Below are positions 256 through 50,662 of a DNA stretch of 64,000 nucleotides, in pieces. A program made the translations under genes and the position numbers. Source of the stretch: Hemiscyllium ocellatum (taxonomy: Eukaryota); the NCBI RefSeq assembly GCF_020745735.1, contig NC_083417.1, positions 38,006,001 to 38,070,000 on the forward strand. The letters are read 5' to 3'. Within the stretch, counting starts at the first letter, position 1. Each line of letters begins with the position of its first letter. The notes beneath the pieces were generated by a model. It was given only the letters and a program-made list of their open reading frames with translations. It was not told the origin of the DNA and searched no databases.

Positions 256-334
256 CATAACATCATATGACACCTTATCAGGCAAATTTTTAAGCCTGCC
301 TTGCAGGGCTTCATAGTCGTTTTGCACTTTAACC
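256..334 (-). CDS. URI1: URI1 coding exon 3 (79 bp)
   Basis: ttttag|GGTTAAAGTG...GTTATG|gtgagt; encodes (W)VKVQNDYEALQGRLKNLPDKVSYDVM. Confidence 0.93.
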
Positions 335-3300
335 CTAAAAGTTAAGTTAATTTTGAGTTATTCAAATTATTTATGTATAAATATCAATTGCTTTCTAAAC
401 ATGCATAATTCTTGACTTTTAACATAATACGAATATAGATTGCTAACAGAACTTATATGCAATATGATTACAGGGACTTTAGAAAAGTACTTAAAGACTT
501 TTTGCAAGAGGAATATTGTGTAAACAGTAATTAGGATTCGGTACTGATGATGCTCTATAGAACACTACTTATTGAGACAGCTGAAAATTGGGCTCATACA
601 ATTTCCAAATTTCAAAAGGTTTGCTAGCAATGTATTAAAAAGCACTATCCTAATTCTATAAAAATAGTTCAACAATAACTTGCTAATTGTTTTTTCAAAA
701 TAATTACACAACCTAGAACTTACTGCATTACCTCAGAACGTGGAACATCACAAATAATAAATTTATCTGCCAATGGAAGGAGGATGTAATGCCTATTTCC
801 AGTGGATCAGTGGGTAAATAACTGGCAGGTAAGGTAAGAAGTCGGGTTCAATTGCTGTTCTTATCAAAAGCTCGATAGTGTCAAATGATTGAAGGCAGCA
901 CAAATGTGCTCAGTGTCCTTGAACTTGAAAAGCATCGAACAATAACAAAAAAAAGGCTATGTAAGCACACTGAAAATCAACAGCAGAAATCCCGATGAAT
1001 TTCTTCTCATTGTTAATCAGAGGCAAAAGTTCTATCACTGATGTGAAAAATGAAGGAGAACAGATGGGAAGAGATGTGAGAATTTCTACAATATCTTAAA
1101 TTTGATTTTCTCTCCGTCAACCTCATAAGAAAGCTAGCCAATTCCATGCATAAATTCTGGGTTACAGTGGTTTCAGATTTGACAAATCCAAGTATATTTA
1201 CATTTATATTACTACAGTAGTTCACCCACCCATTTATTACTGTTTAAAGTAGCTGGGATCTGGCAGAACAAAACCAAGAACACAAACTCCAAACCATAAC
1301 ATCTGTTCTCCACATCAATGGGATATTCTTTAGTTTGCTAAGTGAATGATCTTGAATTTAAGCTCTGCGCCCGAAGTACAAAATAACTCAGCTGCATGAA
1401 CAGTTTTAAAACGTCATTTATGTTATTTGCAAAGTACAGGATATTTTTAACTCTCAGATCGGGAATACTAAGTTCAGTTGTTAATAAAGAATTATTAGGA
1501 GTTTCATATTGACGGCCTGTTTAGTATTAAGTACAGCGAGAAAATTACTTTCACCCATGAAAACAATGAACAAATATTAAGATACATGTTTTTCCATGTT
1601 GATCAATTTCCACTGACAGGATATATTTCTAATAATTGACAAGCAAAATAAAAAAATGTGAAAGACTATAATACAGTAAACATGTTCACAAATGTTTGAG
1701 CTTACCAGTGCTGGATTTTTTCCTTGCAGCTTGAAACCACCTGTTATTAAAATAGACAACTGCTCATGAAAAGCAATGTCAAGAATTCCAAGACTGTTCA
1801 TACTGTAAACAAAAATATAGCAAAAAAAAACTGCAACTTAATTGACCAAAAAACCTGAAACAAAAGATTTTGGGAAGACTTTCATTTGTTTGAAAGGAAT
1901 ATCGGTGTCTCATCGTAATATAAGTAGATACTTTAGTTTTTCCTTCACAAACATTTCACTAAAAACAACTTTAGTTAAAATAATGAACAGGGGAGATAAA
2001 AAGATGTTGCTTTCCTCTAATTGGGTATACAAATCTCTCATGAATTCCTTATCTTTCACATATGACCAAATCAAATGCCTGCCCAATTTCCTAAGGGAAA
2101 GTTATCTGAACTCAAGGCATATGTTCCTCCCGCTCCCCCCCCCTCCCCACTGAGTTAATTGTTTTTTGTGAAAGTTATTGACATCACTTCATATGAGCAC
2201 AATTTGAAGCAAAACAATTAGGTAACTGCAATGAACAAGATCACCTTTTAGGTGAGATGTGATCACAAAAAAATACAAAATGCAATGCAGTCTAATCTTC
2301 AATTAAAAAATGGAATACTTTGCAAGTAATGCACTTCATAGACAACCTGAAGAATTGTTCATTGAAAAAGTAACATGCTAAACATTTGATACAACAAAAG
2401 AGCTCAGGAATATTTTGACAAGGACATTTTTTCAGTTTGTATCAAAAGTTGATTAACTTGCTTCCAATTATATAAGTAAAGTAATTCTACACAAGTGGTA
2501 CATCTAAAAGAGTAAAATGTAAGTTTGAATTTATTTGACACAATTCTTCTATACAAAAAGCAGTAGAATGCAAATGAACTTCAAAAGACAGAAAAGCAAA
2601 CAGATAAGGCTATTCAAGGAACCAAGAGAGTTTAAAGTTTGATTGTTGTAGGAGGGAAGGATCAAAGGTTGCTAAAACAGAAGGGAGTGATATCCTTGGT
2701 TACACACAAAATTACTTTAAAATCAATCACCTCCAATGTTCCTTCAGCCATAAGATTGAAACACTGTCAATACTTTAAATTAATTAGGTTCTTGCCCAAA
2801 TCATTTAAAATATGAGCTGCTACATATACACAATCTGCCAACATAAAGACAGACTACATGTGAATGCTTTTGAAAATTTAGTATGGACTTACAATCTTGT
2901 TCTTTCACTGCTCTGTTGCGAGTTAATAAATTTGGTTCCCTTAACAGGGAAAACAAAAATCAAATTCTGTTCTATCATTATCCAATAAATAGTGACATCC
3001 TGCATGTGGAGGTATCAGATCACAAAGGGACAACAGGTTCAGCTTCAACCTTGTGGCTGAATTGCCTGCCTCACTGTTCATGCTAGTGCATGACATTTGG
3101 CTATGTAAGCAAGATCCTGGCTCTCACCCATAAATACTTCTCAAACAGGTAGACAAAAAAAATTGAGGGACATAAGAGGTAACACCTGTAATTGGAGTAT
3201 TGATTTTATTTGGGGCTTCACAATGATTTTTAAAAACGGCAAAATTATCCAAGTGCAAGTTGTCATCATCCCCAATTTCCAAAATCTGCTTTCAGAGGAA

Positions 3301-6300: not shown

Positions 6301-9300
6301 TTGTAAAAAGCTGCGGTCCCAGTACTGATCCCTGCGGCACCCCACTGGTCACTGCCTGCCATTCCAAAATGGAGCTGTTTACATTTGACATTATCTGTCT
6401 GGGTTTCCAGAAGGCCTCTGACAAGGTGCCATACAGGAGGTATCTTTTATCTTATTGAGGTTGCTCAGTAAGATAAAAGCCAATAGTGTTAGGGGCAAGG
6501 TACCAGTACGGATGGAGGATAGGCTGGCTGGCAGTAGGCAGAGAGTGGGGCAAAGTGATGTTTTTCAGGGTGACAAGCAGAATTCCAAACAGGTCAGTTT
6601 TGGGACCACAACTGGCCATGTTATACATTAATTACCTGGACAAAGGAAGAGAGGTTATTATTGCTAAGTTTGCAGATGACACAAGTCATCTTCGCAGGTG
6701 AAGGGACAGGTATTAACAAGGGAAGTGGTGAAGCTGCAGAAGAACTTGAACTGAGAGGAGAGTGGCAAAGAAATCGCACATGGAATACAATGTGAGAAAG
6801 TGCCAGATTATGCACTTTGTTAGGAAATCTACTGCTGAAGCTGTACAAGAGTCTGGTCAGACCACATTTGGCATATTGAGCGTGGTTAATTTGTGGAACT
6901 CATTGCTGCAGAAGAGTAAGGTCACCAAGTTGTATTTGAGAGAGAGATAGATTCTTGACTGATAAGGGGATCAAGGATTACAACAAAAAGGCAGTAGAAT
7001 GGGGTTGAGAAACTAATCAGCCTTAATGAAATGTCAGAGCAGACACATTGGGTTGATTGCCCATATGCCATAGCAAAAGTAGGCCAATGAAAGAAGCATG
7101 TGTTTTACAGAAAGAGAAATACTTATTAGCTACCTTGATCCAATTTTTTTCCAATCCTACTAGTAACTGGATAGTTGACAGAACAATGGTTGACAACCGA
7201 TTATTTCCAACATCTTTCTCAGCCATTGAGTCACAGTGGTTCCCCTGTGATCTCAGAGACTGATACCATTGTCTCCAAGTGTGAACACCTTACACCATCA
7301 TCCCGGTGTCATAATGTGAGCTTCCAGGGGATCTTGAAATATTACTGGCCTGTTATTAAAGAGGTAACACAACCATCAGTGTATTCTTAAATTTAAAGAT
7401 GGTCATTGTAGTCTGTGATTCAAGCATAGATATTTAATAAAACTTTGATTTGCATGAAAAAATAATGCTGCCAACTCTTAATACAAATATTCATTTAAAT
7501 TTTGCACATTAGCTCGGCTCAAAAACTTGGGAGTCAGTTCTTTCTTCTACATCACCTGATGTCAGTCATTACTAAATTTACATAATAAAACATATTTGGC
7601 AAAATACATTAGAACAGTGTGATACAGGAATGCCTCCTTTTAAAGCATATTATAAATTATTAACTATTTCCACAATTTGAAATTACTGCAATTGAGTTCC
7701 TGTTATGAAACTCTGCCAGAGTAAACCAATTACTTATGAATTACTGGATCAACTAGTCAAGTAAATAAAAAGAATGTTTACCCAGTCGTTCAAAAAGGGT
7801 TTATCCAGAAACTAGATCAGCCATTCAAATAAGGTCATACATAGTTTCAGTTGTACGGTCAATGAAGCTGGGATTTAGGTGCACTCTTAATGGTTTCGCT
7901 GCCAATTATGGGCTATGAAGCAAAAGATCTTCTGATTGCTATTGTGAGTTCCCTGCTGATTGTGAGCACATCAAGAGAGAAATAAGCATGTATAGTGGTA
8001 ATGCCCTGCAGCTGACTATCACGGTCAGGCCTGTACATAAATTACTACTTGGAAAAATGAGGATAACTGAAAGCATGTTTGGGCATGAGCCTATGGATTG
8101 GGTTTTAACGTGCAAATTGAACAAATAGAAAAGAGAAAATTAGAAAAACAAGAGAATTAGAGGGAACCATTGCAGAACAATGTGTCAGGAAAAAGCAATT
8201 GTCGGAACTGTCTCAATGTGACAGTGACATTACAAAAAAAAGCAACAAAATCGGATGGCTCATCAAGCCTGCTCCACCATTCAAAATGATTATGATTGGT
8301 CTTTAACTTCACCTCCAACTTCCCACCTAATCTTCATATTCCTTCATGCCCATAAAATTAAACATTGAACACAAGTAGAGGGCTGAAAAACCTGTGCTGT
8401 ACTTCTCTTTGAACCGACAGCAGAGAATTCCAAAGAATCACAATCCTGTGAATAAGGAAAATCTTTCTGATTTCAGTTTTGATGATTGATTTCTTATTGA
8501 AGACTATTCTCTCTAGTGCTGCATTGTGAGGAAACCTCTCAGTGTCTTATTTGTCAGATACACACTAAATCCAGAGTGTCAAAAAAATCAGAAAATGGGT
8601 CTAACATCATATATGTTAGAAGATACAGAAGCCTGAACACACACACACACCCCTCAACAGGTTCAGGAACAGCTTCTCCTGGGCTGTTATTAGGATGATT
8701 CATGAACTCTCTAGCCTCAAATAAAACTGATCTCGTTAAGTGATCTCACCGACTGCATCCCCTGTGCGAGGTAACCTGTATGCCTCCGTCTGTTTTTTTT
8801 TATAACTTTAGATCTGTACACGCTTGATCTGCCTACTGCTCGTAAACAAAACTTGTGTACTTCTGCACGTGACAACAAACCAATAAACTTTACAAAATAT
8901 TGAGTATAATTGTTTGCATTGACAGCTACTAGAGTACTACACTAGACAACGGTTTTGGTCACTAAAAGTAGAAAACGTTATTTTTTTGAAAGATGAGGAC
9001 CAGGTTACTCATCTCACTGAGGAGATGAATGTAAATAAACTCCCAGAAAGATGGAAGCAACATGACATCAATTGCACAGGTACAAAAAGCGATGATTTCC
9101 TGTTTCGATTACATTGAATTCGAAACTCACACCGCGTTTAGCGAATGTACTTGCTTCTTAGTACTTTTCTCCCTTATTAAAAAAAGTTCGCGTTTCCAAT
9201 CTTTTCGCCAATTTAGAAAATGCTCAGATACTCTTCTACCTTGTAAAAAACACTCCCGTTTCGCTAACGGGAGATTTCTACCCGAGCTGGACCGACTGGG

Positions 9301-9662
9301 ATCTGAATCACAACCCGGCCCAGAGCCCGCTACACCGGGGGGTGGGAGGAGGAGCAGGTCTGTCTGAGCCCCCAGTAAACAGGTGACAACGGATCTGGGC
9401 AGACGGGGCGGTGACACTTTGACCAAAACATGACCTGGGCCCCGCAGGCTGGAGCCTGAAACAAAAACCCCGCTGCAGCCCAGGCTCCTTCTCCTGGTTC
9501 TTCCGCCTGATTTTAACACAATGGCCGCCGCTGCAGCTGCTGCCGCCGCCGCTTATTTACGGCCTTTACCTTTCCGTGCTCTTCTCGGAGCCGTGAGAGA
9601 GTCAGTGGCTGGGAGTGCGGCGGTTTGCTGGCGGCACAGGGCCGATGCTGCGAGTCTGCCAT
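256..9662 (-). CDS. URI1: URI1 (unconventional prefoldin RPB5 interactor 1), 5' part; coding exons 9570-9662, 1706-1740, 256-334; continues beyond the left edge
   Basis: Spliced translation MADSQHRPCAASKPPHSQPLTLSRLREEHGK|VVSSCKEKIQHW|VKVQNDYEALQGRLKNLPDKVSYDVM matches vertebrate URI1 as recalled (RLREEQEKVVTNCQERIQHWKKVDNDYNALRERLSTLPDKLSYNIM). All junctions are GT-AG and phases are consistent. It lies downstream of CCNE1 on the same strand, as at the human locus. Confidence 0.93.
1706..1740 (-). CDS. URI1: URI1 coding exon 2 (35 bp)
   Basis: aacag|GTGGTTTCAAGC...CAGCACTG|gtaagc; encodes VVSSCKEKIQH(W). Confidence 0.92.
4250..7050 (+). mobile_element. Decayed CR1-clade LINE (APE/RT remnants), interrupted by a younger inverse CR1
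   Basis: Remnants QPWLTKEV, GFQKASDKVP, SVLGPQL...AKFADDT, MEYNVRKCQIMHF. Confidence 0.75.
5500..6380 (-). mobile_element. 5'-truncated CR1 LINE 3' end nested in the older CR1
   Basis: ORFs 6236-, 5978- and 5575-: [47 protein letters not shown]. Confidence 0.9.
8590..8890 (+). mobile_element. Rex1-like LINE 3' fragment
   Basis: Similar to 21680-21880 (agatacagaagc-tgaacaca...cctcaaataa...gtaacct), which ends the Rex1 element. Confidence 0.5.
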
Positions 9663-10015
9663 TTCCTCCAGAGCCGGAGCCGGAGCCGGAGCCCGAGCTT
9701 GTGTTTGATAAACACTCAGGAACTGGGAGTCCTAAAGAAATGTTTATGTATGTGATAACTGCAGCTGCACAACTCCTCACTCCTCGTCCGCATAGAGAGA
9801 GCAGGTCTTGTCATCAACACTGTCGGAGCGGAAAACATCTCACACTCGCATTATTAGCACAAATAGCCCGAAGCGCAGCTGTTCCTTTTTTCGTTGAAGC
9901 CGCTCGCTCTCAGCAAGACCCACCGCCCGACGCCATCTTGCTCCGGGACGGTCTGGACCGCGGCACGTGACACAAGGGGGCGGGATGCGACTCGACACGT
10001 GATACAAGGGGCGGG
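9187..10015. repeat. Left arm of inverted segmental duplication (URI1 promoter + exon 1 + intron 1 start)
   Basis: Reverse complement of ~22650-23484. Position p pairs with 32660-p across 9203-9958, and the ORF-track translations mirror each other (9127..9519 vs 23141..23527; 9521..9970 vs 22564..23139). Confidence 0.95.
9570..9662 (-). CDS. URI1: URI1 coding exon 1 (31 codons)
   Basis: GAAATGG start with an in-frame TAG upstream; ends RLREEHGK|gtaaag in phase 0, matching exon 2; lies in a CpG-rich region. Confidence 0.88.
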
Positions 10016-10060
10016 TACTGTCTTGAAACGTCACTATTGAGCACGTGATAACGGTAGGGA
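9900..10060 (-). promoter_or_regulatory. URI1 CpG-island promoter (copy 1)
   Basis: CACGTG E-boxes at ~9964, 9996 and 10043, GGGGCGGG GC boxes, and a YY1-type AAGATGGCG motif near 9931-9939; high CpG density. Confidence 0.7.
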
Positions 10061-10261
10061 GCCTCGCGAGAGGGAGAGAGTGTACGCCTGTTGTTGAGGT
10101 AGTGCGGGTACGGTATGAGGACTGCTATGAGTGGAATCAAACAGGTGTGTCACTCCTCAAAGCACTACCGTTGTTCTGTCCAGGAAAGGTTTCTTCCCTT
10201 AATGACTTCACGCTAAGTTTATGCATGTAATTTTTCAGAACTGTCTTTCATTTTCAAACTG

Positions 10262-10650
10262 ATGTGGGGTGCCGGTGTTGGACTGGGGTGGACAAAGTTA
10301 AAAATCACAACGCAGGCTATATCCGACAGGTTTGTTTGGAAGCATTCGTTTTCAAACTGCTGTTCCTTCGTCAGGTAACTAGTGGGGCAGGATCATAAGA
10401 CACAATGTATAGCAAAAAGTCTCAGTGTCATGACATTGTACAAACCTAGAATGCTCTTAAGTCTTTAGATCTCTGTCATGAATGGACACACCTTGGTAAA
10501 GACTGTTTTGGTTAAGTCTTAACAGCAAGCTAGATTTGTTCAGTATATTGTTTTAATTGCATGACATTGTGACCTTTTGCTATAAATTCTGAGACTTAGG
10601 AACCTGCCCCTCTAGTTACCTGATGAAGGAGTAGTCCTCTGAAAGACAGC
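10262..10650. mobile_element. Penelope-like element remnant with inverted terminal sequences
   Basis: Shares GCCGGTGTTGGACTGGGGTG...AAGTTAAAA with 50255-50372; ~10355-10435 is an inverted match of ~10560-10645, including CTGATGAAGG. Confidence 0.65.
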
Positions 10651-10804
10651 CAGTGACCAGTGCTGGATATTGCTGAGACCAGTGCTTGGACCCCAGTTAT
10701 TCACAATATGAAGGAACAAAATACAGTGTATCTAAGTTTACAGATGGTGCAAAGCAGAATGGGGGAGTGAATGGTAAGGAGGATGCAGAGATGCTTCAAT
10801 GTGA

Positions 10805-11150
10805 AGAACTGAAAACAAAAAATGCTGGAGATCATAGCAGGTCAGACAGCATCCATGGAGAGAAAGCAAGTTAACATTGAGTCTAGAAGACTCTTTACTA
10901 GTGCTGGAGTTAAATATGCAGGGGGCAGCATTTATGCAATAGTGGGAGGGGGGTTGAAGTGGTCATGCTTGCACATAGGCTGGCTATGTTCTGCAAAGTG
11001 GTCACCCACTCTGTGTTTGGTTTCTCCAATGTAGAATAAGTCACATTTGGTGCAGCAAATACGATGTACAAGATTGGAGGGGGTACAGGTGAAATGCTGC
11101 ATCGTCTGGAAAGACTGTTTAGGCCAGTGTGATTTGGACAAGGTCCTTGA
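10805..11150 (-). mobile_element. Penelope-like GIY-YIG endonuclease fragment
   Basis: ORF 10932..11159 FTCTPSNLVHRICCTKCDLFYIGETKHRVGDHFAEH. Confidence 0.8.
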
Positions 11151-12284
11151 TGGGTTCAACTAGTATTTGCTCCAAAAGACCTCTATGTTGAATGTTGGGT
11201 ATCAACATCTTGTGAATGTCCATGTGTACCAGTCACTTGTGCCCTACGTCATCTGTGATCCTCATGGCACATCTTTGATCTATTTACAGGACTCTTCTGG
11301 ACTTCATAAATAAACCTGTGTTTGCACAAGCACCTATCATTGTAATGCTGCTGCAAGTACACTTACGCTCAGGGTCACAAGCCTAGTTCACAGACTGGAC
11401 TATTTTTGGGCTCTTTGCTTATTAACGTAGTGCCTACTGTGAGCCTATCCAAATGCTCACAAGATGCTTGATTTTCCTTTTTGCACATTACCTGTCAGCA
11501 AAAGATACCAGGCTCATATTAGAAATAAAATCAAATAACTGGAAAAACTCAACAGTTCTGGAAGCATCTGTGAATGGAAAGCTTAGTTAATGTTTTGGGT
11601 CCAGTGACCCTTCTGTTTACGCCTCACTATCCAACTCAACTTTCACTTGAGCCAATACTCACTGACATCTCAGGTTCTGCAACACCATTAAGTTATTTGC
11701 TTTGCTCAATATCATTTGCCAGGACTACTGATGTCTAGATGAGTGTTGGACCTTCCTGTATTGTGCAGTCTACTAATGTTGGAGCTGTGGGAGATCCTCT
11801 TTTGAGATAGATGGTAAAAGTGAGACTACACCTGGTTCTACCTGTTTGGACTTAGTTTGGAGCTCACCCATCAGTAAGGATATTGTAGTCTGAGTGTCTT
11901 AAGGAATCAGAGTCGGAGTGACCTTGGAACAGCTTCAGCCTTCCTCACTGACATTGTCAGTCTCAGCTCCTTAATCTCATCCCATATCTTGATGTCTGCA
12001 CAGTAGAATCCTGCCAACTCTATCAGAAATGTAACATGAAATTTTAACACATGACTCAGAAATCACGAAGCAGAGGTGATAAAATGATTTATTGATTCTT
12101 TATTCCACTGTCATCAGGTCATTGAGATGTTAAGGATAAATAAGCAACTGTTTATACTATGTAAATGGATTGACTGTGTGGGTTACATTGGGCCACGGAA
12201 TTGCTTTGTCTGACTTCATTCTCATCAACCCTTTCACTAATTGAGACATACTTTCTTTGTATGTCAAGTGTCTATTCAAATGGA

Positions 12285-12600
12285 ATCCTAGAAGCTCTAT
12301 GTTGTGGAAACAGACCTTCGACCCAATATGTACACACCTACCCTCCAAAGAGTAACCCACCCAGACCATTTCCCCTATCCTATTATCCTATGTTTATCCC
12401 TGACTAATGCACCTAACCTACACATCCCTGAAGACTGTGGGCAATTTAGCACAGCCAAATCACTTAACCTGCACATCTTTGGATTGTGTGAGGAAACCGG
12501 AGCAACCAGGGTAATCCTACACAGACATTAGGCTGGAATCAAACCTGGATCCCTGATGCTGTGAGGCAACAGTGCTAACCACTGAGACATCATGGCGCCC
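12285..12600 (-). mobile_element. HE1-type V-SINE (decayed)
   Basis: tRNA-like head (CAGTGGTTAGCACTG), V-domain GCTCCGGTTTCCTC, CR1-like tail. Confidence 0.8.
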
Positions 12601-12671
12601 CACTACTCGAGCTGCCTTTCTCCATGTTGCTGATTGCTGCCAGATGTCTTTGAAATCTGCTCTGCTCCCTG

Positions 12672-13030
12672 CTCAATGCTCGGAGAAGTGAAGACTGCAG
12701 GTGCTGGAGAATCAGAGCTGAAAAGGGTTGTGCAGGAAAAGCACAGCAGTCCCAGATCCACCCCTCCAATTTGGCACTGTCCTGTTGACCTGTCTATTTT
12801 CCTTCCCATCTGTCTGCTCCACCCTTCCCACTGATCTATCACAATTATCCTCCACCTGCCCACCTGCTGTCCCCCCCCCCCCCCAGCCCCAGCCCCAGCC
12901 CCACCCCCACCCTCTTAGTTATCCCCCATCCCCACCCACATTCCTGATGAAGGGCTTGTGCCTGAAACATCGACTCTCCTGCTCCTCCAATGCTGCCTGA
13001 CTTGTGCTTTTCCAGCACCAGCTTTTTCAT
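12672..13030. mobile_element. Penelope-like terminal remnant (inverted ends, hammerhead-like core)
   Basis: GGAGAAGTGAAGACTGCAG...GAAAAGCACAGCAG at the left, TGTGCTTTTCCAGCAC at the right; CTGATGAAGGGCTTGTGCCTGAAAC near 12945. Confidence 0.65.
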
Positions 13031-15274
13031 CTCTTCTTGGTGTCCCCATCACTGTTGCTGCCTGCTGCTTGAGGTCTTGATACAAAAAGAAATTGTGATT
13101 GTCTGTATATTAAGTGTTTTTTTGAGTTCTGTTTGGCATTGATGTTACCAAAATCACATCATATATTAGCCATCTCACTGAATATTTTACAAAGCAGTAC
13201 ATTCATGTCAGTACTGGCATGATAGGCAAAGAGAAACAGAATCACAAAAATAAAATAATGAAATATGGACCTACAGAATTAATTGTTATTTTAATCAAAG
13301 TTTAGACTGGTTTTGTTTTCTTTCTGCAATTTCACATGTCTTATGTTGAAAAGACATTATATTACATGCATACAATTTGTATACAGATAATGCAAATAAA
13401 TACAAGTGACTGTGTGAGAAATTGATCATGCAAAACATTTTATGTTATGCCAATGCAAGGAAGATTAGTTCAAGGTTTCAGACATCTGTCATCAAATGCA
13501 TTTAAAATAGCATTCATGCAATATTCAAAATGTCACAAATTATGTTAACTTATTGAATAACGTGGAGTAACAAGTCATTGGTTTCCACTAAAATAATTTT
13601 TGAAGGAAAGTAGTAATTTTAAAATGGATCAGTATTTCATATCCTTTCTGAAATCCAGTTTTTGTTTCAAAGTAATATTTTGATCTTGTGAATGATGATT
13701 ATTGTGTTTGTTCTCTTCCTTTTTAAGTTTTGCATTACATACTAGTATTCACAAATAAACACATGCATTTCCTAATTTTCCAGCTTTGCACATAAAATAT
13801 GGAAAAGAGAAATTAGTTCAGCCCACCAGGACCAATGTCTTTATTTTTAAAATTTAATCGTTTATTTTCATAAACAAATGATTCCTGATAACAATTTTGG
13901 TGATTTATTCTGTAAGAAATATGTGTTAATCAATTAGATTCTTCACTCTTACAAGTGTTCAATCATTGTAATGAGAAAGTGGAGTTGAGGCCTGAAATCA
14001 TCCACAATTGTATTCAATGATGAAGCTTGCTCAGTGGGCCATATGTGCATCTTCTTGTGGAAGACTGGCAACATCACATCGTTTGGATATGTCATTGTTA
14101 TTGTGTGAGACAGCTCCTTGATGCATGATCTGCTATAAATGCTGTTGGATGCGAATCTTATCAGATCGAGTGGATCGGTTGGAGAGACAGACAGAAGCGA
14201 TGAGGAATTTGCAACAGTATGTGATGGATGGCAGTTATAGGAAGGGGGGGGGGGAAGTCTCCGATACAGTCACATAGATGGGTTAACTCCAGGAAGGGTA
14301 AGAGAGATAGGCAGCTAGTGCAGGAGTCTTTTGTGGATATACCCATTTCAAATAGGTATGCTGTTTTGGAAAATGTGGGGGGTGATGGATTCTCAGGGGA
14401 ATGTAGCACGAACAGCCAAGTTTCTGGTATTGAGACTGGCTCTAATGCAAAGAAGGATACGTTGGCTTCCAAGAGATTAATTGTGTTAGGGGATTCTGTA
14501 GTCAGAGGTACAGACTGACATTTCTGTGGCCAGCAGAGAAAAAGCGGAATGGTGTGTTGTTTCCCTGGTGCCAGGATCAAGGATGTCTCGGAGACTGTGC
14601 AAAATGTCCTCACGAAGGAGAGGGGCCAGCAGGAGGTCATTGTCCACATTGGAACCAACGACATAGAAAGGGAAAAGGTTAAGATTCTGAAGGGAGATTA
14701 CAGAGAGTTAGGCAGAAATTTAAAAAGGCGGTCCTCAAGGGTAGTAATATCTGGATTACTCTCAGCGCTACAAGCCAGTGAGGGCAGGAATAGGAGGCTA
14801 GAGCAGATGAATGCATGGCTGAGGAGCTGGTGTATGGGAGAAGGATTCACATTTTTGGATCATTGGAATCTCCACTGGGGTAGAAGTGACCTGTACAAGA
14901 AGGATGGATTGCACCTAAATTGGAAGGGGACTAATATACTGGCAGGGAAATTTGCTAGAACTGCTTGCAAGGATTTAAATTAGTAAGGTGTGTGTACGTG
15001 TGTGGGTGGGGGGGAGGGAACCCAGTGAGATAGTGAGGACAGAGATCGACCTGAGATGGGTACAGCTGAGAACAGAAGTAAGTCAAACAAACAGTCAGGG
15101 CAGGCAGGGACAAGATGGGACTAATAAATTAAACTGCAATGCAAGGGGCCGAACAGGGAAGGCAGATGAACTCAGGGCATGGTGAGCAACATGGGACTGG
15201 CATATCATAGCAATTACAGAAACATGGCTCAGGGATGGACAGGACTGGCAGCTTAATGTTCCAGGATACAAATG

Positions 15275-15578
15275 ATTAGATTACAGTGTGGAAACAGGCC
15301 CTTCGGCCCAACAAGTCCACACCGACCCGCCGAAGCGCAACCCACCCATACCCCTACATTTACCCCTTACATAACACTACGGGCAATTTAGCATGGCCAA
15401 TTCACCTAACCCGCATATCTTTGGACTGTGGGAGGAAACCGGAGCACCCAGAGGAAACCCAAGCAGACACGGGGAGAACGTGCAAACTCCACACAGTCAG
15501 TCGCCTGAGTCGGGAATTGAACCCGGGTCTCAGGCGCTGTGAGGCAGCAGTGCTAACCACTGTGCCACCGTGCCGCCC
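15275..15578 (-). mobile_element. Young HE1-type V-SINE with 7-bp TSD ACAAATG
   Basis: Full tRNA head GGGCGGCACGGTGGCACAGTGG...GGTTCAATTCC, V-domain and TCTAA tail. TSDs at 15268-15274 and 15579-15585. The empty site is seen in the other CR1 copy (~55595). Confidence 0.95.
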
Positions 15579-16550
15579 ACAAATGCTACAGGAAGGATAG
15601 AAAGGGAGGCAAGAGAAGAGGAGGAGTGGCATTTTTGATAAGGGATAGCATTACAGCTGTGCTGAGGGAGGATATTCCTGGAAATACATGCAGGGAAGAC
15701 ATTTTGATGGAACTGAGAAATAAGAAAGGGATGATCACCTTATTGGGATTGTATTATAGACCCCCCAATAATCAAGAGGGAAATTGAGAAACAAACTTGT
15801 AAGGAGATCTCAGCTATCTGTAAGAATAATAGGGTAGTTATGGTAGGGGATTTTAACTTTCCAAACATCGACTGGGACTGCCATAGTGTTAAAGGTTTAG
15901 ATGGAGAGGAATTTCTTGAGTGTATACAAGAAAATTTCTGATTCAATATGTGGATGTATCTACTAGAGAAGATGCAAAACTTGACCTACTCTTGGGAAAT
16001 AAGGCAGGGCAGATGACTGAGGTGTCAGTGGGGGAGCACTTTGGGGCCAGCGACCATAATTCTATTCGTTTTAAAATAGAGATGGAAAAGATAGGCTAAA
16101 TCTAAAAGTTCAAGTTCTAAATTGGAGAAAGGCAAGAACTTTCGAAAGCAGATGTTCGCAGGTAAAGGGACGGCTGAAAATGGAAGCCTTCAGAAATGAG
16201 ATAACAAGAATCCAGAGAAAGTACATTCTTGTTAGGGTGAAAGGGAAGGCTGGTAGGTATAGGGAATGCTGGATGACTAAAGAAATTGAGAGGTTGGTTA
16301 AGAAAAAGAAGGAAGCATATGTCAGGTATAGACAGGATAGATTGAGTGAATCCTTAGAAGAGTACAAAGAAAGTAGGAGTATATTTAAGAGGGAAATCAG
16401 GAGGGCAAAACGGGGACATGAGATAGCTTTGGCAAATAGAATTAAGGAGAATCCAAATGGTTTTTAACAAATATATTAAGGACAAAACGGTAACTAAGGA
16501 GTGAATAAGGCCCCTCAAAGATCAGCAAGGCGGCCTTTGTGTGGAGTTGA

Positions 16551-17570
16551 AAAATGTGATGCTGGAAAAACATAGCAGGCCAGGCAGCATCCAAGGAGCA
16601 GGAGAACCGACATTTCAGGCATAAGCCCTTCTTCAGGAATGAGGCTGATGTGCCAAGTGGGCTGAGGTAAAAGGTAGGGGGGAGAGAATTTGGGGGAGGG
16701 GCACTGGGAATGCGATAGATGGAAGGGGGTGAGGGTGATAGACCAGGGAGGGGGTGGGGGCGGAGAGGTCGGGAAGAAGATTGCAGGTCAAGAAGGCGCT
16801 GCTGAGTCTGAGGGTTGGGATTGAGAAAAGTTGGGGGGGAGGGGAAATGAGGAAGCTGGAGACATCTGTATCCATCCCTTGTGGTTGGAGGGTTCCTAGG
16901 CGGAAGATGAGTCGCTCTTCCTCCAGGCGTCGTGTTGCCACGGTCTGGCGATGGAGGAGGCCAAGGACCTGCATGTCCTTGGCGGAGTGGGAGGGGGAAT
17001 TAAAGTGTTCAGCCACGGGGCGGTTGAGTTGGTTGGTGCACCTCTGGGACACGCGCACCAACCAACCCAACCGCCCCGTGGCTGAACACTTTAATTCCCC
17101 CTCCCACTCCGCCAAGGACATGCAGGTCCTTGGCCTCCTCCATCGCCAGACCGTGGCAACACGACGCCTGGAGGAAGAGCGACTCATCTTCCGCCTAGGA
17201 ACCCTCCAACCACAAGGGATGGATACAGATGTCTCCAGCTTCCTCATTTCCCCTCCCCCCAACTTTTCTTAGTCCCAACCCTCAGACTCAGCACTGCCTT
17301 CTTGACCTGCAATCCTCTTCCCAACCTCTCTGGCCTATCACCCTCACCTTAACCTCCTTCTACCTATCGCATTCCCAACGCTCCTCTCCCAAGTCCCTCC
17401 TCCCTACCTTTTATCTTAGCCTGCTTGGCACACCCTCCTTATTCCTGAAGAAGGGCTTATGCCCGAAACGGCGATTCTCCTTCTCCTTTGCTGCCTGACC
17501 TGCTGCGCTTTTCCAGCAACACATTTTTAAGCTCTGATCCCCAGCATCTTCAGTCCTCACTTTCTCCTAC
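16551..17570. mobile_element. Penelope-like element as a long inverted repeat (two GIY-YIG 3' ends in opposite orientation)
   Basis: Mirror ORFs 16633..17262(-) and 16754..17272(+) both contain PVAEHFNSPSHS...RRLEEERLIFRLGTLQPQGM, the C-terminus of a PLE GIY-YIG domain. Confidence 0.88.
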
Positions 17571-18440
17571 TTGAAACTTGAAAGGGTTCAGAAAAGATTT
17601 ACGAGGATGTTGCCAGGTTGGAGGATCTGAGCTACAGGGAGAGGCTGGACAGGCTGGGGCTGTTTTCCCTGGAGCATCGGAGGCTGAGGGGTGATCTTAG
17701 AGGTTTACAAAATTGAGGGGCATGGATAGGATAAATAGACAAAGTCTTTTCCGTGGGGTCGGGGAGTCCAGAACTAGAGGGCATAGGTTTAGGGTGAGAG
17801 GGGAAAGATATGAAAGAGACCTAAGAGGCAACTTTTTCACGCAGAGGATAGTATGTGTATGAAATGAGCTGCCAGAGGATGTGGTGGAGGCTGGTATAAT
17901 TGCAACATTTAAGAGGCATTTGGATGGGTATATGAATAAGAAGGGTTTGGAGAGATATGGGCCGAGGGCTGGCAGGTGGGACTAGTTTGGGTTGGGATGT
18001 CTGGTCGGCGTGAACGGGTTGGACCGAAGGCTCTGTTCCCATGCTGTACATCTCTATGCAAGCTCCAATATTAAAGCCTGATAAGTTATTGGAAAAGGAT
18101 AAGTATATTTTTGAAGGGAGAGAGTTGAGATTTCTCCCAGCATACATTACAAATATATCTCTTCCAGTTTGTGATGACCTGATGACAATGGAATAAAGAA
18201 TATAAAGAATAAACAAATAATTTAAAAATCCCTGCTTCATGATTACAAAGATATGACCCTCCCTGATGCGATTAAAGCTTGGTTCGAGCAGAATGCCAAC
18301 AGAATTGTGTCATCTGCCTCTACAGCCCTCAACACACCTGTGCTGACAGTCACCATTGCAGATGTCAGATTGGTCTTCCTGGGAGTAATCGAGCACTCAG
18401 ATTCTGTGCGGATCAACTGGCAGAGGTATTCACTGACATC

Positions 18441-18598
18441 TTAGATTAGATTACTTACAATGTGGAAACAGGCCCTTTGGCCCAACAAGTCCACACCGAA
18501 CCACCGAAGCGTGACCCACCCAGACCCATTCTCCTACATTTACCCCTTCACCTAACACTACGGGAAATTTAGCATAGCCAATTCACCTAACCTGCACA
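18441..18598 (-). mobile_element. HE1-type SINE, 3' half
   Basis: TTAGATTAGATTAC...GGAAACAGGCCC...CCCAACAAGTCCACACC as in 15275-15420. Confidence 0.8.
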
Positions 18599-19185
18599 AT
18601 TTCAACCTCTCCCCAAGCCAAAGTCCCTACCTGCTTTAAGAAGACCACCATCATCCCGGGATCTAAGATAGCACATGTAACCTGCCTTCATGACCACTGC
18701 CCAGAGGCTCTCACCTCAATAATCATGAAGTGCTTCAAAAGACTGGTCATGGCTTACATCAACTCCAGTCTCCCAACCTGCCTCAATCCCTGACTGATGT
18801 CATAAGTTCACAGGGGATGCCATTGCCCTAGGCCTGCACTCATCCCTGGAACATCTGGACTTTAAGGACACATCAGAGTCCTGCTCACCTTCAACACCAT
18901 TGTCTTCTCCAGATGGATCTTAAAACGCCAATACTTTGGTCTTGGCTCCCCTCTCTGCAACTGGATCCTTAGCTTTCTGACCCAAAGACCACAGTCCATG
19001 AAGATAGGAACTGCACCTCCTCCACCATAACACTCAACACTAGAGCATCCCAAAGGATGTGACCTCAGCCCCTTACTTTACTCACTATAAACCCATGACT
19101 GTTGCCAAATTCTGAACGAATACCATCTACAAGTTCAGTGATGACACCACCATATCTAATGACGATGAGTCAAAATAGCGAAGGG

Positions 19186-20068
19186 TATGTTTGCAGATGA
19201 CACCACAATTGGAGGTGTAGTGGACAGCAAAGAGGTTTATCTCAGATTACAACAGGATCTGGACCAGATGGGCCAATGGGCTGAGAGGTGGCAGATGGAG
19301 TTTAATTCAGATAAATGCGAGGTACTGCATTATGGGAAAGCAAATCTTAACAGGACTTGTACACTTAATGGTAAGGTCTTCAAGAGAGCTGCTGAACAAA
19401 GAGACCTTGGATTGCAGGTTTATAGCTCCTTGAAATTGGAGTCACAGGTAGATAGGATAGTGAAGAAGGCATTTGTTATGCTTTCCTTTATTGGTCAGAG
19501 TATTGAGTATAGGAGTTGGGACGTCATGTTGCGGCTGTACAGGATATTGGTTAGGCCACCGTTGGAATTCTGGTCGTCTTCCTATTGATAAGATGTGAAA
19601 CTTGAAAGGGTTCAGAAATGATTTATAAGGATGTTGCCAGGGTTGGAGGATTTGAGCTACAGGGAGAGCTGAACATGCTGGGACTGTTTTACCTGGATCG
19701 TTGGTGGCTGAGGGGTGACCCTATTGAGGTTTACAAAATTATGAAGGGCATGGATAGGGTAAATAGGCAAAGTCTTTTCCCTGGGGTCGGGGAGTCCAGA
19801 ACTAGAGGGCATATGTTTAGGGTGAGAGGGGAACGATATAAGAGATCTAAGGGGCAACTTTTTCACGGAGAGGGTTGTGTGTGTATAGAATGAGCTGCCA
19901 GAGGACGTGGTGGAGGCTGGTACAATTGCAACATTTAAGAGGCATTTGGATGGGTATATGAATAGGAAGGGTTTGGAGCGGTATTGGCCGGGTTGGGATT
20001 GGGTTAGGATATCTGGTCGGGTTGGACCGAAGGGTCAGTTTCCATGCTGTACATCTCTATGACTCTGA
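19186..20068 (+). mobile_element. 5'-truncated CR1 LINE
   Basis: ORF 19187 FADDTTIGG...WQMEFNSDKCEVLH; tail CTCTATGACTCT. Confidence 0.9.
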
Positions 20069-20224
20069 GATAGAGGACCTTGGTGACAAGCAGTTAGAAC
20101 AACCTCTCCCTCAACATAAACTAAATATGTTGGAAGGACCCCCCATCTACATCAATGGAACTGAGGATGAGCGGGTAGAGAAAATGAAGTTCCTCAGAGT
20201 GTTAATAATTGACAACCTGGCAAG

Positions 20225-21300
20225 GGTGACCAGGGTAGGGGACATGCTGGGTGCCGGGGTCCTGGGCTGGACGCTGCTGCAGGACATAAGAGAGCAGGGC
20301 AGTGGTAGACGTCCAGTATGTGGCCACCGCCATCCAACATCTTAAAACGTCGATGCTCGGACCCGATGTAGTGCACCAGTTGGAGGATACTCAGGTGTGC
20401 GGGGAATCCCATCCGCGCTTACCCCTGCCCAGAAGTAATTTTACATTGGCCTCAAGGTTCCATACTTCCCGCAGGGGCCTGTGCCCCACAACCTGAGCCG
20501 CCTCCGGAATTTTAATTTTGTCCCTTTTTAAGGACGTAAAAAGGCGGGCCCTGTATCGACTGCTGCTGCACACCGCCCACCTCTTCTCCCTCATCCACCG
20601 TTTGGACACGTCTTGTCGTGCCCATTTGCCACCAAGTGGTGGGGATCCCCAGTGGAGGGCTCCCAACACAGGAGTCCTCTCCTTCTCTCAGGGATCTGGG
20701 GTGGAAGGTGCTGCACGCAACGGTCCCCTGCAACCGCAGATTGCAGTGGTTCACGAACTCCCAGTCCAACTGCTTGTTCTGTGGCACTGTATAGTCCGTG
20801 GACCATGTGTATATTGGGTGTGGGTGTTTGCACTCCCTTTTTGATTTTCTTAAAAAGCTCCTCTGCTTTTGGTTGCACTTCAGTCCCACGCTCCTGATCT
20901 TTGGGCACCCGGTACGGAGGAGGGAGGGCATGTCTGAAGACCTCCTCGTGGGTCTGCTCTTGGGCCTGGCCAAAGTGGTCATAAACAGGTCCAGGCAGCG
21001 GGACGTGGAGGCGGTCGTTAAGGCTGACTGCCTGTCCCTCCTCCGCAGTTATGTTAGAGCCTGGTGTCTCTGGAGAAGGTGCACTTTATGTCTCACACCT
21101 GCACGCACACACCATGGGTGCTGGAGAAAAATAAGCACTACCGCAGTTAGGGATTTAGGCGGTAGTGTGGGGGTTAATTTTTTAAAAATTGTGCACCTTT
21201 TGTTGTTTACTGTGTCTCACACCTGCACACACACAACATGGCTGCTGGGGAAAAAATAAGCACTACTGCAGTTAGGGAGTTAGGCGATAGTGTGGGGGGA
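20225..21300 (+). mobile_element. Tx1/L1-clade LINE 3' fragment (GC-rich) with duplicated 3' UTR unit
   Basis: LYRLLLHT..., FSPTLLIFGHP...LLVGLLLGLAKVVINRSR resemble the Tx1 ORF2 C-terminus. Confidence 0.65.
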
Positions 21301-22529
21301 AAGAAGAACAGGTGTGCAAGAGGTTCTGTTCATTCTGCGAGAAAAAAATAATTGACAATCTATCCTGGATCTTCCAGTCAAGAAGGTACAACCATGCCTC
21401 TCCTTCCTCAGGTAGCTCAGGAAAATTGAAATGTTCACAAGAACCCTTACCAACTTCCAAAGATGCATCACTGAAAGCATAATGTCTGAGTGTATAACAG
21501 CCTGGTGTGGCAACTGCTCCAGGACTAAGAAACTACAGAGGCTGTATGCACAGCCCAGACAGAAGCCAACCTTCCATCTGAGAACTCCATTCACACAGCT
21601 CATTGCTGGGAAATGCAGTCACCATCATTGAAGACCCATTGCTCCCCAGTAATGATCGCCTACAATCTCTTTCATCAGGAGGAGATACAGAAGCTTGAAC
21701 ACATGCACTAGCAAGTTCATCAACAGCTCCTTCCCGGCCGTTATTAGATAAATGGATTCTCTCACCTCAAATAATGCTGATCTTGCTAATGTTGATCTTG
21801 CCTTGTGTATTCCCTGTGCAGTGTAACCTACATGATCTGTACATCACTGCTTACGATGAGCCGCCTGCATTGCTCATTGAGTGAATAATTTATTTTCACG
21901 TGGACCAAAACTAATGGTCACGCGTGTTTGCTTGGCAATTCTAATTTCAATTGTTTCCTTCAGAGAATAGCAGATATTAGGAATTACTAAAGAACAAAGT
22001 TAGCATCCTTTTATTGAATGTGTATGCTAAATTTTAATATATTTGTAGCTAAGTTTACAGCTAGTGAACTTGAAGTTTAAATCATTCAACTTGGATTACG
22101 CAGCACTTTTCTGGTAATGCACCAAACACTAAGAACGGATATTAACAGGACAATGCGTGGATTCACCACAATAACAATAACGTACACTGTAAAATGATAG
22201 TACACCAAAATTAAAAATAACACAAATTGTTGAGAAAGCTCAGCAGGTTGGACAGGTTTTGTCGAATGGTTAACATTTCGGTTCGAGTGATTCTTCCTCA
22301 GAACTGATGATACTCCGAAGTGGTTTTGAATGAGTGTATGAAGTCAGGTATGCAGCACCTGTCAGTGCTGGTGTTTTCAGCAGTCAGACACCATGTGTGT
22401 TTACCTTCCGAGTCACGTACTCTGCTGTCACCGGGCTGAACCCAGGCGCCGATTGGTCATGTGACCCACAATGACAGGCTCACATCACGTCATGAGAAGC
22501 AACCGCACCCCGTGTCGTCCCCGCCCCCA

Positions 22530-22698
22530 TGTCACGTGGAGTGTTACGTCCACGCCCCTTGTATCACGTGTCGAGTCGCATCCCGCCCCCTGTATCACGT
22601 GCCGAGTCGCATCCCGCCCCCTGTATCACGTATTGGAGTTGCATCCCCACCCCTTGTATCACGTGTCGAGTCGCATCCCGCCCCCTGTACCACGTGCC
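22530..22698 (+). repeat. 31-bp minisatellite TGTATCACGTGTCGAGTCGCATCCCGCCCCC (E-box + GC box per unit)
   Basis: Units start at 22560, 22591, 22622 (diverged) and 22655, with a partial unit at 22686 and a degenerate one at 22530. Confidence 0.9.
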
Positions 22699-22997
22699 GC
22701 AGTCCAGACCGTCCCGGAGCAAGATGGCGTCGGGCGGTGGGTCTTGCTGAGAGCGAGCGGCTTCAACGAAAAAAGGAACAGCTGCGCTTCGGGCTATTTG
22801 TGCTAATAATGCGAGTGTGAGATGTTTTCCGCTCCGACAGTGTTGATGACAAGACCTGCTCTCTCTATGCGGACGAGGAGTGAGGAGTTGTGCAGCTGCA
22901 GTTATCACATACATAAACATTTCTTTAGGACTCCCAGTTCCTGAGTGTTTATCAAACACAAGCTCGGGCTCCGGCTCCGGCTCCGGCTCTGGAGGAA

Positions 22998-23090
22998 ATG
23001 GCAGACTCGCAGCATCGGCCCTGTGCCGCCAGCAAACCGCCGCACTCCCAGCCACTGACTCTCTCACGGCTCCGAGAAGAGCACGGAAAG
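22998..23090 (+). pseudogene. Orphan duplicate of URI1 coding exon 1 (intact ATG and donor; no clear downstream URI1 exons)
   Basis: Same sequence as 9570-9662, with donor GTAAAG at 23091. No recognisable URI1 exon 3 between here and CCNE1. Confidence 0.75.
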
Positions 23091-24049
23091 GTAAAGGCCG
23101 TAAATAAGCGGCGGCGGCAGCAGCTGCAGCGGCGGCCATTGTGTTAAAATCAGGCGGAAGAACCAGGAGAAGGAGCCTGGGCTGCAGCGGGGTTTTTGTT
23201 TCAGGCTCCAGCCTGCGGGGCCCAGGTCATGTTTTGGTCAAAGTGTCACCGCCCCGTCTGCCCAGATCCGTTGTCACCTGTTTACTGGGGGCTCAGACAG
23301 ACCTGCTCCTCCTCCCACCCCCCGGTGTAGCGGGCTCTGGGCCGGGTTGTGATTCAGATCCCAGTCGGTCCAGCTCGGGTAGAAATCTCCCGTTAGCGAA
23401 ACGGGAGTGTTTTTTACAAGGTAGAAGAGTATCTGAGCATTTTCTAAATTGGCGAAAGGAGACAGCAGTGATTGGAAACGCGAAATTACTAGATAGCGTT
23501 CAAAAGTGTTTTTACTTAGGATTTTAAACGTGTGCATTTGCCTTTTAGGGCAGTCGTTTTCCTGAAGTCGAGTTCAAGCTATAAGCTCGGAGATTATGTA
23601 TTCCTGAAAGATCCAGGGATGGCGAACACTTTTTTCATCATCAGTACACTCACTTATATATCAGATGAGGTGTATCTAGGAAATAATGAATTGGTTTAAT
23701 AATTAATCTAAGTATGATCACGTTTTTATGGGCGACATTTATTTGCTGCAAAACGATTACGTTAAGCAGTGTTTTATATTTATCAGAAAAAGCAACAATA
23801 GTTGCTGCTGACCTTAAATTTGTACACAGTGCTTATAATTGTGGTTTCCTGATCTTTTTCATGTGACTTTTCATATTCTCCAAGGCAGCAAATCAGAAAT
23901 TGTCAAATTGCTGAATTGATTTATTTTTAATTTTTATCTAAAATATTGGGGTGTTGTAATTAGGTAACTTAAATTATATACTTTAAAAAGTTTTTAAGGT
24001 GTAGGGTTTCTTTCAGAATGGGTACCGTTGACATTCAGCAAAAATAATG

Positions 24050-40885: not shown

Positions 40886-43800
40886 CTAAGAAAAACAAAA
40901 AAGGTCAGTCTGTTCAGATTACTTGGAGAGCAATAAGTTTTCCAGAGAAAGACCCTTTCAGTTTCAGATATGTTCATCAGGAGGCAAATGTTAACCAGAA
41001 TGACTCCAGTCAATGGCATTACTGACTTGTATTGTTTCAATAACTTAACTGATTTGCATTTAGACATTCATAATCATAAATCACCTGAAGTGCTTTGGAA
41101 TATTTAGTACAAATCAGTATTGATGGGAAAAAGCTTCTCAAAAACGAGCACAAATTAAATGATGCAGATAAAGAAACATCCTGTATAGAATAATATCCTG
41201 CTGTTCAAAAGTATTGAAATATTAAAGTCACAAGCTTTGACTATGTAATGTTCATTGTTTCAAAGAGTCAGTGAGAGATGGACCCTAAATCAGGGGTCAT
41301 TTAAGATAAAGCTAAGGCCCCAGGAGTATCAGCAATCTAAGCTACAATTGAATTTTTTTGATGAGATTTGAAAAAGCTGTCTAACTCCCCACGAACAATG
41401 AATAGACAGGAATTACTATCCTTAGTGCATGGAGAAAGGTTTAAAAAGGAAGCAGCCAAGATAAGTGGTTCACTAATAGTTTTGCATATGACCATATGAA
41501 AAGTTAATCTTACCAGTAATAATAAGCTGTTAGAATGTGTCTGTATGTTGTGCAAATCTTCTGGACAGACACCTTTCAAATGTTTGAGTGTTATACTTCC
41601 CAGTTCTCTCAAGGCCATAGCAAATGGAACCATCCATTTCACACATCCTTCTATTTCACTCCATTCAAATCCTAAGCATTAAACAAGTTATTAATTGTAG
41701 TTATAAACAGCAATTAAAATTTGTAGTAATCTTGAAGATCACCCTACCTGAGACTTTGTGAACTAATTCACAAGACGAAAAGTGATACAGAGCTGAAGCT
41801 GCTGTAACTCCATATGTGAACTCCAAACATCTGAAATCCAAGATACAGAGATCCAATAGCTGCAGATAAGAGTAGTTAACACTATTAGTATTGCAAGGTT
41901 GGCTTAATTCAAACAGAATAGGTTGATAATCATAAAGAGGGGAAAATAGATTACTGTACCACAGGGTGTAACACTTTGTTCCTCCAATACCACTTATTTG
42001 AGCAAAGACTACTGGAAAGAAACTAGGGATGGAATTGTGCCTCAAACCCTGAATTCCATACAGAATCAATCTTTGGCCTACAGTCTATTGGAGGATCTGG
42101 GACAATGTATACTTCACTAAATGCTTACCCTACTTGATACCTCTTGTTAAAAATTGAAAAGAAAAATACCAAGTGTCTTGGGAATCAATGCACTTCACAG
42201 TAAGCTTTTACACTATTGATTTTCAGTGACACTCTACAAAAGATCAGAAAAGTTGTTTTTTTCTGCATTCAGAAATTCTTGTCATTGAGTCAATGATTAT
42301 GAATAAAATGCACAAGTTGGGAAATTAACAGATGGAAGGTGTTGATGATTTAATGCATTCAAGTGCTGTGTTCATGTAAGCTAAGGAGCAAATATTTTCG
42401 TTCCATACTTTAACCTAACTTGCAACATAAAGAACACTAGATACAATCTCGAGTAAGATAGTGGTATATGCTGTCTGGACTATAATAGTTTACACTAGCC
42501 TGAGCACCTTCTATGTCATTAGCCCAATTTTCTCACACCAGCCCTTATCTCAGGTTGCTATGATAACCATCCTGTGGGCAATTACTAATGGTTCTAATTA
42601 GTAGCTATTGAATCACCTAGGCTGACCTTGATCCATTCCTTTCTGTCCAACTATTTCTCTTTGGGCTTATCTCTACTTATTTACTCCTCCACCCACTCCA
42701 TCCTCAGTGCACAACCAAACTTTTTCGTAGCTGTAAATTAATTCTGGATGGTCACTGAACCCAAGCCATTAATTCTGCTTTCTGTCCACAGATACTGCCA
42801 GGCCAGTTGAATTCTCTCTCCCACTCCCCCCAACCACCAAGCAAATTTTTGATTTCTAACATCCACAGATTGTGTGCACGTGCGCGCCTGGACCATAGTA
42901 ATTGGGTATTTGTAGATGGAGACTCAGCTACATAGCAGATGTCTATTCTGAATTTCAGGTTCAGCTGAAGCTAGTGAAACTTGCAGGTATTCTGTCAGAG
43001 GAAAGATAGATACTTGATCAGATTGTAGTTTAAGACATTGCAAAGAACAGATCTTATGTAATAGGTACATGTGCTTATTGTCTGACTGTTGGAGAGACAA
43101 CAGGAATGCAAACTTTGATCACTGGAGTGTGCACAAGGAAGCAGCCATTTTTGTCAGTGATTTCCTAGCAGGATTGACAGTCTTGTGTATTGTTATCTTT
43201 ACTATTGTAAGGCAAATGGGCATCACAAACTAGCTTAACCGTGTGGAAATGGGCTCAACCTGTAGGACAAAGCAAGAATCTGTTTTCATTTCTTGAGCAG
43301 TAGTAAGGATTTTTTATTACCATGGATAGGAATAAGGTAGCACCAAAATGTCAGCCCAGATTGTTTGTGTTTGAACCCACTTTTGATTGTAGTCAAGGGA
43401 AAAGAACGCCTCAAAGTTCATTCTGGAGTTTTAGTCCAATTCTAGAAATACTACCATTTATCACTAGATTAGAATTGGAACCAACTACATCAAATTAAGT
43501 TGCTGATCAACAATGTTTAGACAGACAAAATAGCTAAATGCAATAAGATAAGATATCTGAAATTTACCTCCATTACTTGAACAAACATTTCTTGTGGGTA
43601 CTGTGGTATTAATATTTCATACATTTCCTGCAAATATGCAATTTGCATGTAGATGTTGAGCCAAGACACAATTGTTATCGGGCACAAATTCCACTTGAGA
43701 GCCTAGAACAATATGAATACAGCAGATCAATTTGACAATTGTACTTCGTTTCAAGTCTGATACGAGAAAATGTTTGCAGTCAGAAGAGGCTACATTCTCC

Positions 43801-50630: not shown

Positions 50631-50657
<27 letters not shown>
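50631..50657. repeat. (GT)n microsatellite followed by GCGCGC
   Basis: About 13 GT units read directly. Confidence 0.95.

Positions 50658-50662
<5 letters not shown>

Follow-up and report, generated by a model that had tools for sequence, protein, structure and literature searches.

The 64-kb window analyzed here, which is the whole stretch taken from contig NC_083417.1 of the shark Hemiscyllium ocellatum, carries the 5′ end of a gene that we take to be URI1 in two inverted copies with a spacer between them. What is seen at the locus is most probably a scar left by a recent evolutionary inversion, and not a working genetic switch. We give a probability of about 0.5 to the reading that it is the footprint of one small (~12.7 kb) inversion just upstream of URI1, which arose through staggered breaks and duplicated one of its own breakpoints.

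Two inverted copies of the URI1 5′ end

The initial annotation, made from the letters of the window, had described a 756-bp perfect inverted repeat, and this was confirmed. The stretches 9203-9958 and 22702-23457 are exact reverse complements with 0 mismatches and a constant coordinate sum of 32660. Gapped homology reaches further, from 9184-10015 to 23487-22646 (843 columns, 97.9% identity), so that the duplicated block measures ~835 bp around a 756-bp core. At the outer edge of the block there are 2 mismatches in the outer 19 bp, and an 11-bp indel separates this outer stretch from the core. The 11 bp (23458-23468) are present only in the right copy, with 15 further matching bases beyond them; a nearby template for them was sought, and none was convincing. 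The inner edge shows 6 mismatches and 1 gap within 60 bp. In the flanks beyond the block, the likeness between the arms fell to the level of shuffled sequence (local alignment scores of 13 and 14; shuffle means of 12.6 and 12.0). The homology of the left copy stops sharply at 10018 (GGGGCGGGTA/CTGTC). By eye, neither junction shows a poly-A tail, a target-site duplication or a transposon end, and a transposon-mediated origin of the duplication was set aside for this reason.

Both arms face outward, the left one on the minus and the right one on the plus strand. Each copy contains, within the core, the URI1 5′ untranslated region (UTR), coding exon 1, the splice donor and 367 bp of intron. The outward orientation and this content, including an intron stretch put at ~370 bp, agree with the initial annotation. 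The left core arm has 48 CpG and 57% GC. Exons 1, 2 and 3 splice in frame on the minus strand through consensus splice sites (Table 1), and motif scans of the plus strand beyond the right copy found no counterparts of exons 2 and 3. Because the in-frame exons 2 and 3 lie to the left and none followed the right copy, the left copy is the working 5′ end of URI1, and the right copy is an orphan facing the 3′ end of the neighboring cyclin E gene (CCNE1), a distinction that the initial annotation did not draw.

An assembly error, with a false second copy or a falsely oriented spacer, is very unlikely. Perfect identity can mark collapsed or mis-polished repeats. Against such an error, the window is gap-free (0 N in 64 kb), the two arms do not make up a fold-back palindrome, and the 12.7-kb spacer is unique and lacks symmetry about the center of the repeat. 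Both junctions, at 10018 and at 23484, are sharp, and array length and edge variants are not the same in the two arms, which would be unexpected for artefactual copies of a single locus. Long reads should easily span a 756-bp repeat, if the assembly is a long-read assembly as the absence of gaps suggests. The only other near-perfect long repeat in the window is a transposon fold-back (see below).

Opposite orientation of the spacer in Chiloscyllium punctatum

A protein search with the 149-residue antisense open reading frame (ORF) of the core returned one match only, the hypothetical protein chiPu_0022278 of C. punctatum, with 85% identity. Exact look-ups of two antisense ORFs that cross the inner arm edges (191 and 149 amino acids) matched no contig. 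The 6477-bp scaffold that carries chiPu_0022278 (L001) was the sole related sequence compared, and it aligned to the window in three blocks (Table 1). The first two run along the plus strand, through URI1 intron 1 and then through the core with the first two array modules. The third runs along the minus strand through the inner flank of the right copy and ends in a transposon fragment at a position that matches the one in the window. No match was found between the scaffold and the spacer beside the left arm (10019-12000).

A three-way alignment placed the point of departure. The C. punctatum sequence passes from module 2 into a long E-box/GC-box array and the inner flank of the right copy, and the left copy departs at 10018 into unrelated DNA. 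Because the scaffold joins URI1 exon 1 to DNA that lies here beside the orphan copy, the spacer is by sequence comparison oppositely oriented in the two sharks, at least over 19.9-22.4 kb, and the upstream edge of the left copy at 10018 is an apparent rearrangement breakpoint. Intron 1 follows the left copy without a break, and the right copy passes straight into the long array and the DNA that formerly lay upstream, in the order found in C. punctatum. The scaffold covers 2.5 kb of the spacer and stops short of both the second breakpoint and the outer junction of the right copy. The initial annotation had pointed to orthologous shark loci as a check, and C. punctatum, with one scaffold only, gave the opposite orientation.

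About 177 bp of the window (9065-9241), which include the outer limit of the block, are absent from the scaffold at 2873/2872, and the ends of this stretch share a TG microhomology. Probably the stretch was deleted in C. punctatum or dropped from its assembly. Its absence makes the outgroup unusable at the outer edge of the block.

A proposed single inversion with a duplicated breakpoint

We infer a one-step mechanism, as the most economical one. One breakpoint would have fallen in the region of the URI1 promoter, exon 1 and intron 1, with the 835-bp block lying between staggered breaks, and a near-flush break would have occurred 12.7 kb upstream. Fill-in of the overhangs and then end joining of the inverted middle piece would leave the inverted segment with a ~835-bp copy at either end, the two in opposite orientation. 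The gene would keep the left copy, and the right orphan would inherit the distal ancestral promoter, that is, the rest of the array, the CCAAT box and the old upstream DNA. The predicted ancestral junction would join the reverse complement of 10019 onwards directly to 23485 onwards. No repeat or ORF spans this junction as reconstructed, and an inverted duplication of the second breakpoint was sought and not found. Should the duplication be a by-product of the inversion, the inversion gave rise to the repeat and not the reverse.

The far sides of both new junctions (10019-10250 and 23485-24000) have CpG observed/expected ratios of 0.74-0.96. If these two stretches adjoined before the inversion, the second breakpoint also lay in a CpG island, ~12 kb upstream of URI1.

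Events of this kind are known from Drosophila, where 17/29 fixed inversions carry inverted breakpoint duplications of 46 bp to ~1.9 kb, with duplication from one breakpoint only in 12/18 (PMC1885836). By analogy, the 835-bp one-sided duplication fits the Drosophila range. In staggered-break inversions (Ranz et al. 2007, PMC1885836; Guillen and Ruiz 2012, PMC3355041), as at the shark locus, gene-derived and non-repetitive sequence is inverted-duplicated at both ends of the segment, and one copy keeps the gene intact. The host here is a shark rather than an insect, the inversion is very small, and the duplicates are 100% identical over 756 bp versus a mean of ~88% in Drosophila. The single-copy ancestral state is only putative in the shark case.

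Age of the arms and a possible origin from older arms

The arms differ at 0/756 positions, versus 4.9% between the two species for the core (30/615). From these two values, the arms are estimated to be younger than ~8% of the time since the split of the two sharks, provided that gene conversion played no part. Two hypermutable microsatellites in the core, (GCC)n and (GAGCCG)n, have equal copy number, and thus the same length, in both arms. The perfect core means either that the event was recent or that gene conversion keeps the arms alike.

The second possibility leads to a different history, which is plausible and clearly less probable than a single inversion. An inverted 835-bp copy would first have been placed ~12 kb upstream, and non-allelic homologous recombination would later have flipped the spacer once or repeatedly, with gene conversion keeping the central 756 bp identical. 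The inversion may then be recurrent or still polymorphic, which amounts to the mechanism of the initial annotation on an evolutionary timescale. A perfect repeat of 756 bp should suffice amply for such recombination. The inversion of F8 intron 1 takes place between roughly 1-kb repeats. The opposite orientation in C. punctatum speaks for this history as well, and the pattern in the scaffold is equally expected from a single duplicating inversion and from a crossover in the core. In humans, inverted-repeat inversions by such recombination are common and often recur (11/16 within or between species; PMC3961182). Human polymorphic inversions (Aguado et al. 2014, PMC3961182) share with the shark locus a segment that lies between inverted repeats of very high identity and is turned differently in related genomes, and exchange by gene conversion is plausible at the shark locus too. 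The shark arms are short beside those of most human cases, the two orientations come from different species, and arms that predate the inversion are only putative.

Several points weigh against a single duplicating inversion. The edges of the block are ~10% different (~8 substitutions and 2 indels in ~79 bp) versus 0/756 in the core, and ragged edges around a perfect core would fit older arms whose center was homogenized by gene conversion. For the outgroup there is one short-read scaffold only, and its core is interrupted by a gap of 42 N beside a poly-G run. If C. punctatum has two identical arms, the join in this scaffold could be wrong, or the scaffold could show the flipped state of an older two-arm locus. 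The name URI1 rests on likeness to the conserved N-terminus and on synteny with CCNE1, and no tool match confirmed it. In the literature cited here, staggered-break inversions come mainly from insects, and for vertebrates recombination between repeats is favored, as in a herring paper (PMC11499932).

Other observations count against older arms, which require two events where one suffices. At the differing sites of the inner edge, C. punctatum has the base of the left copy in every case but one (59/60 bases), and the changes sit in the right copy. Some of these look copied from units of the array nearby, and at two of them CpG has become TpG. The minisatellite that holds the inner edge changes fast, and the outer-edge differences are <30 bp from the junction. 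Because of the apparent array copying, CpG decay and closeness to the junction, the edges are a poor clock. Only one contig in the protein collection has a relative of the core ORF, although a short-read assembly could merge two copies into one.

Upstream regions of the two copies and the switch idea

The initial annotation had counted about 2 upstream units on the left and about 5 plus extra motifs on the right, and the inequality was borne out. Upstream of the left copy there are two E-box/GC-box modules followed by unrelated DNA; upstream of the right copy there are five CACGTG sites and a CCAAT box. URI1 in the left copy keeps ~356 bp upstream of its ATG, with two E-boxes, two GC boxes and a YY1-like AAGATGGCG motif. 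This motif lies at 9931 and 22721, inside both arms, in the likely start-site region. An upstream ORF of 8 codons, ATGGCGTCGGGCGGTGGGTCTTGCTGA, begins within it in both copies (9904-9930 on the minus strand and 22730-22756 on the plus strand). The new CpG-rich flank upstream of the left copy carries a CTCGCGAG motif at 10063. We considered this flank as a decayed array unit and rejected the idea, the common part being a 10-base E-box match that was not significant.

The orphan copy retains five E-boxes, four array GC boxes, the CCAAT box and an intact splice donor. Since these elements are retained, the orphan could yield a transcript heading towards CCNE1. The CpG observed/expected ratio is 0.7-1.0 in both copies and in the unique flanks, versus 0.1-0.4 around them. 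If the event was recent, this retention of CpG says nothing about the present activity of the orphan promoter.

These unequal upstream regions had suggested a promoter switch. The crossover geometry behind that idea stands: recombination in the core flips 9959-22701, swaps the upstream regions and leaves the URI1 transcript unchanged. The C. punctatum scaffold has this flipped order, with URI1 intron 1 followed by the core, the long array and the sequence of window positions 22433 down to 19935. A regulated or somatic switch, in which the spacer would flip within individuals or tissues and change the array that drives URI1, is extremely improbable. The geometry and the unequal number of E-boxes and GC boxes speak for it, and nothing more. 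No recombinase or any further gene was found among the ORFs of at least 70 amino acids in or beside the spacer (six spacer ORFs and one ORF of a retroelement just outside were scanned with Pfam, and the rest were judged by eye). The arms, at 756-835 bp, are long homologous blocks and not short recombination sites. The proximal promoter and the likely start-site region lie inside the arms, and flipping would therefore at most modulate URI1 and not turn it on and off. We know of no precedent for such a switch in vertebrate germline genes. Phase variation of the fimS/hin type uses short repeats and a dedicated site-specific recombinase for on/off expression within a cell population. The shark locus resembles these bacterial switches in that inverted repeats bracket a segment carrying promoter elements. 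It differs in that short repeats, a dedicated recombinase and on/off control were not found.

A live inversion that flips recurrently and is still polymorphic is very unlikely as well. It would toggle URI1 between the two-module promoter and the ancestral one with five or more modules. Each orientation would then act as an expression allele, and recombination between the arms, along with gene conversion, would maintain both. The alternative state would have a strong promoter driving orphan exon 1 towards CCNE1.

Gene identity and the neighboring CCNE1

We take the spliced exon 1-3 peptide to resemble the conserved URI1 N-terminus. Pfam, solved-structure and protein searches with the short exon peptides gave no match, the pieces being too short. 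The spliced 69-residue peptide matched nothing among solved structures or in the protein collection, and the 31-residue exon 1 peptide, compared with the whole library, retrieved low-complexity proteins only.

Upstream of URI1, on the same strand, lies a CCNE1-like gene. It has at least 6 recognizable coding exon pieces in 41340-51000 (minus strand). Pfam Cyclin_N was detected in three successive minus-strand exon pieces at 43.9-47.4 kb (E 3e-8 to 4e-16), and a CpG-rich block at 49-51 kb forms the 5′ region of the gene. The order CCNE1 then URI1 on one strand agrees with what we take to be the human order.

Content of the spacer

The spacer holds a CR1-like long interspersed element (LINE), with an ORF1 containing a GDSL esterase domain (Pfam PF13472, GDSL-esterase type, E 3e-11) and reverse transcriptase pieces. 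This LINE family has two copies in the window, one in the spacer (14228-16540) and one beyond the CCNE1 promoter (52900-58200), with 83-94% identity. Short interspersed element (SINE) copies and Penelope-like pieces are also present. The Pfam scan of the six spacer ORFs returned the LINE esterase ORF1, a weak reverse transcriptase match and one weak sub-threshold match, and the spacer ORFs judged by eye looked like Penelope-like and LINE pieces.

A fold-back at 16587-17494 has arms of 213 nucleotides (16827-17039 and 17055-17267) that are 98% complementary around a 15-nucleotide loop, with weaker outer arms. On both of its arms, the ORFs resemble the GIY-YIG end of a retroelement of the Penelope-like type (NRPVAEHFNSPSHS...). 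Rfam gave no match to a hammerhead ribozyme in the fold-back and no family across the whole window. A 120-bp repeat with 78% identity occurs at 10261-10376 in the spacer and at 50252-50372 in the CpG-rich region of CCNE1. It adjoins a small, miniature-transposon-like hairpin at 10350-10644.

Table 1. Features of the window and their matches in the C. punctatum scaffold L001
Feature	Position in window	Strand	Basis or remark
Left duplicated block, working URI1 5′ end (5′ UTR and exon 1, with two E-box/GC-box modules upstream and the start of intron 1 downstream)	9184..10018	-	Gapped homology to 23487-22646
Left arm, perfect 756-bp core	9203..9958	-	0 mismatches to 22702-23457
Right duplicated block, orphan promoter, exon 1 and intron start, facing CCNE1	22646..23487	+	Gapped homology
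Right arm, perfect 756-bp core	22702..23457	+	Orphan exon 1 coding sequence at 22998-23090
Long E-box/GC-box minisatellite of right copy, 31-bp unit	22517..22704	+	Tandem Repeats Finder 22553-22704, 4.8 copies; further unit matches to 22517
Inverted segment (spacer), mostly transposon debris	10019..22516		LINE, SINE and Penelope-like pieces
Presumed ancestral URI1 upstream region, now beside orphan copy	19935..22433	-	Collinear with L001 3857-6477, 87-89% identity
URI1 coding exon 1	9570..9662	-	ATG at 9662, 31 codons, donor AAG/GTAAAG at 9570/9569
URI1 exon 2, 35 nucleotides, encodes VVSSCKEKIQHW	1706..1740	-	AG acceptor, GTAAG donor
URI1 exon 3, 79 nucleotides, encodes VKVQNDYEALQGRLKNLPDKVSYDVM	256..334	-	AG acceptor, GTGAGT donor
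Cyclin E (CCNE1-like) exons, upstream neighbor of URI1, same strand	41340..47370	-	Pfam Cyclin_N, cyclin E motifs
L001 1-2873, URI1 intron 1, outer flank of left copy	6262-9064	plus	90-92% identity
L001 3020-3693, core and first two array modules	9337-10015	plus	94% identity
L001 3857-6477, inner flank of right copy	22433 down to 19935	minus	87-89% identity

Implications

For specialists in structural variation, a known kind of event of this sort is not very surprising. If the one-step reading is true, the locus shows at sequence level, for a cartilaginous fish, an inversion in which the breakpoint itself was duplicated. In the literature cited above, this mechanism is documented mainly in flies, and recombination between repeats is preferred as the explanation in vertebrates. 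With perfect arms the segment is prone to flip again, so that one may reasonably suspect an inversion polymorphism here. It appears that the duplication spared URI1, an essential chaperone gene, the loss of its promoter and first exon. The outcome would be a natural experiment, with the gene on a truncated promoter and the full ancestral promoter on an orphan exon.

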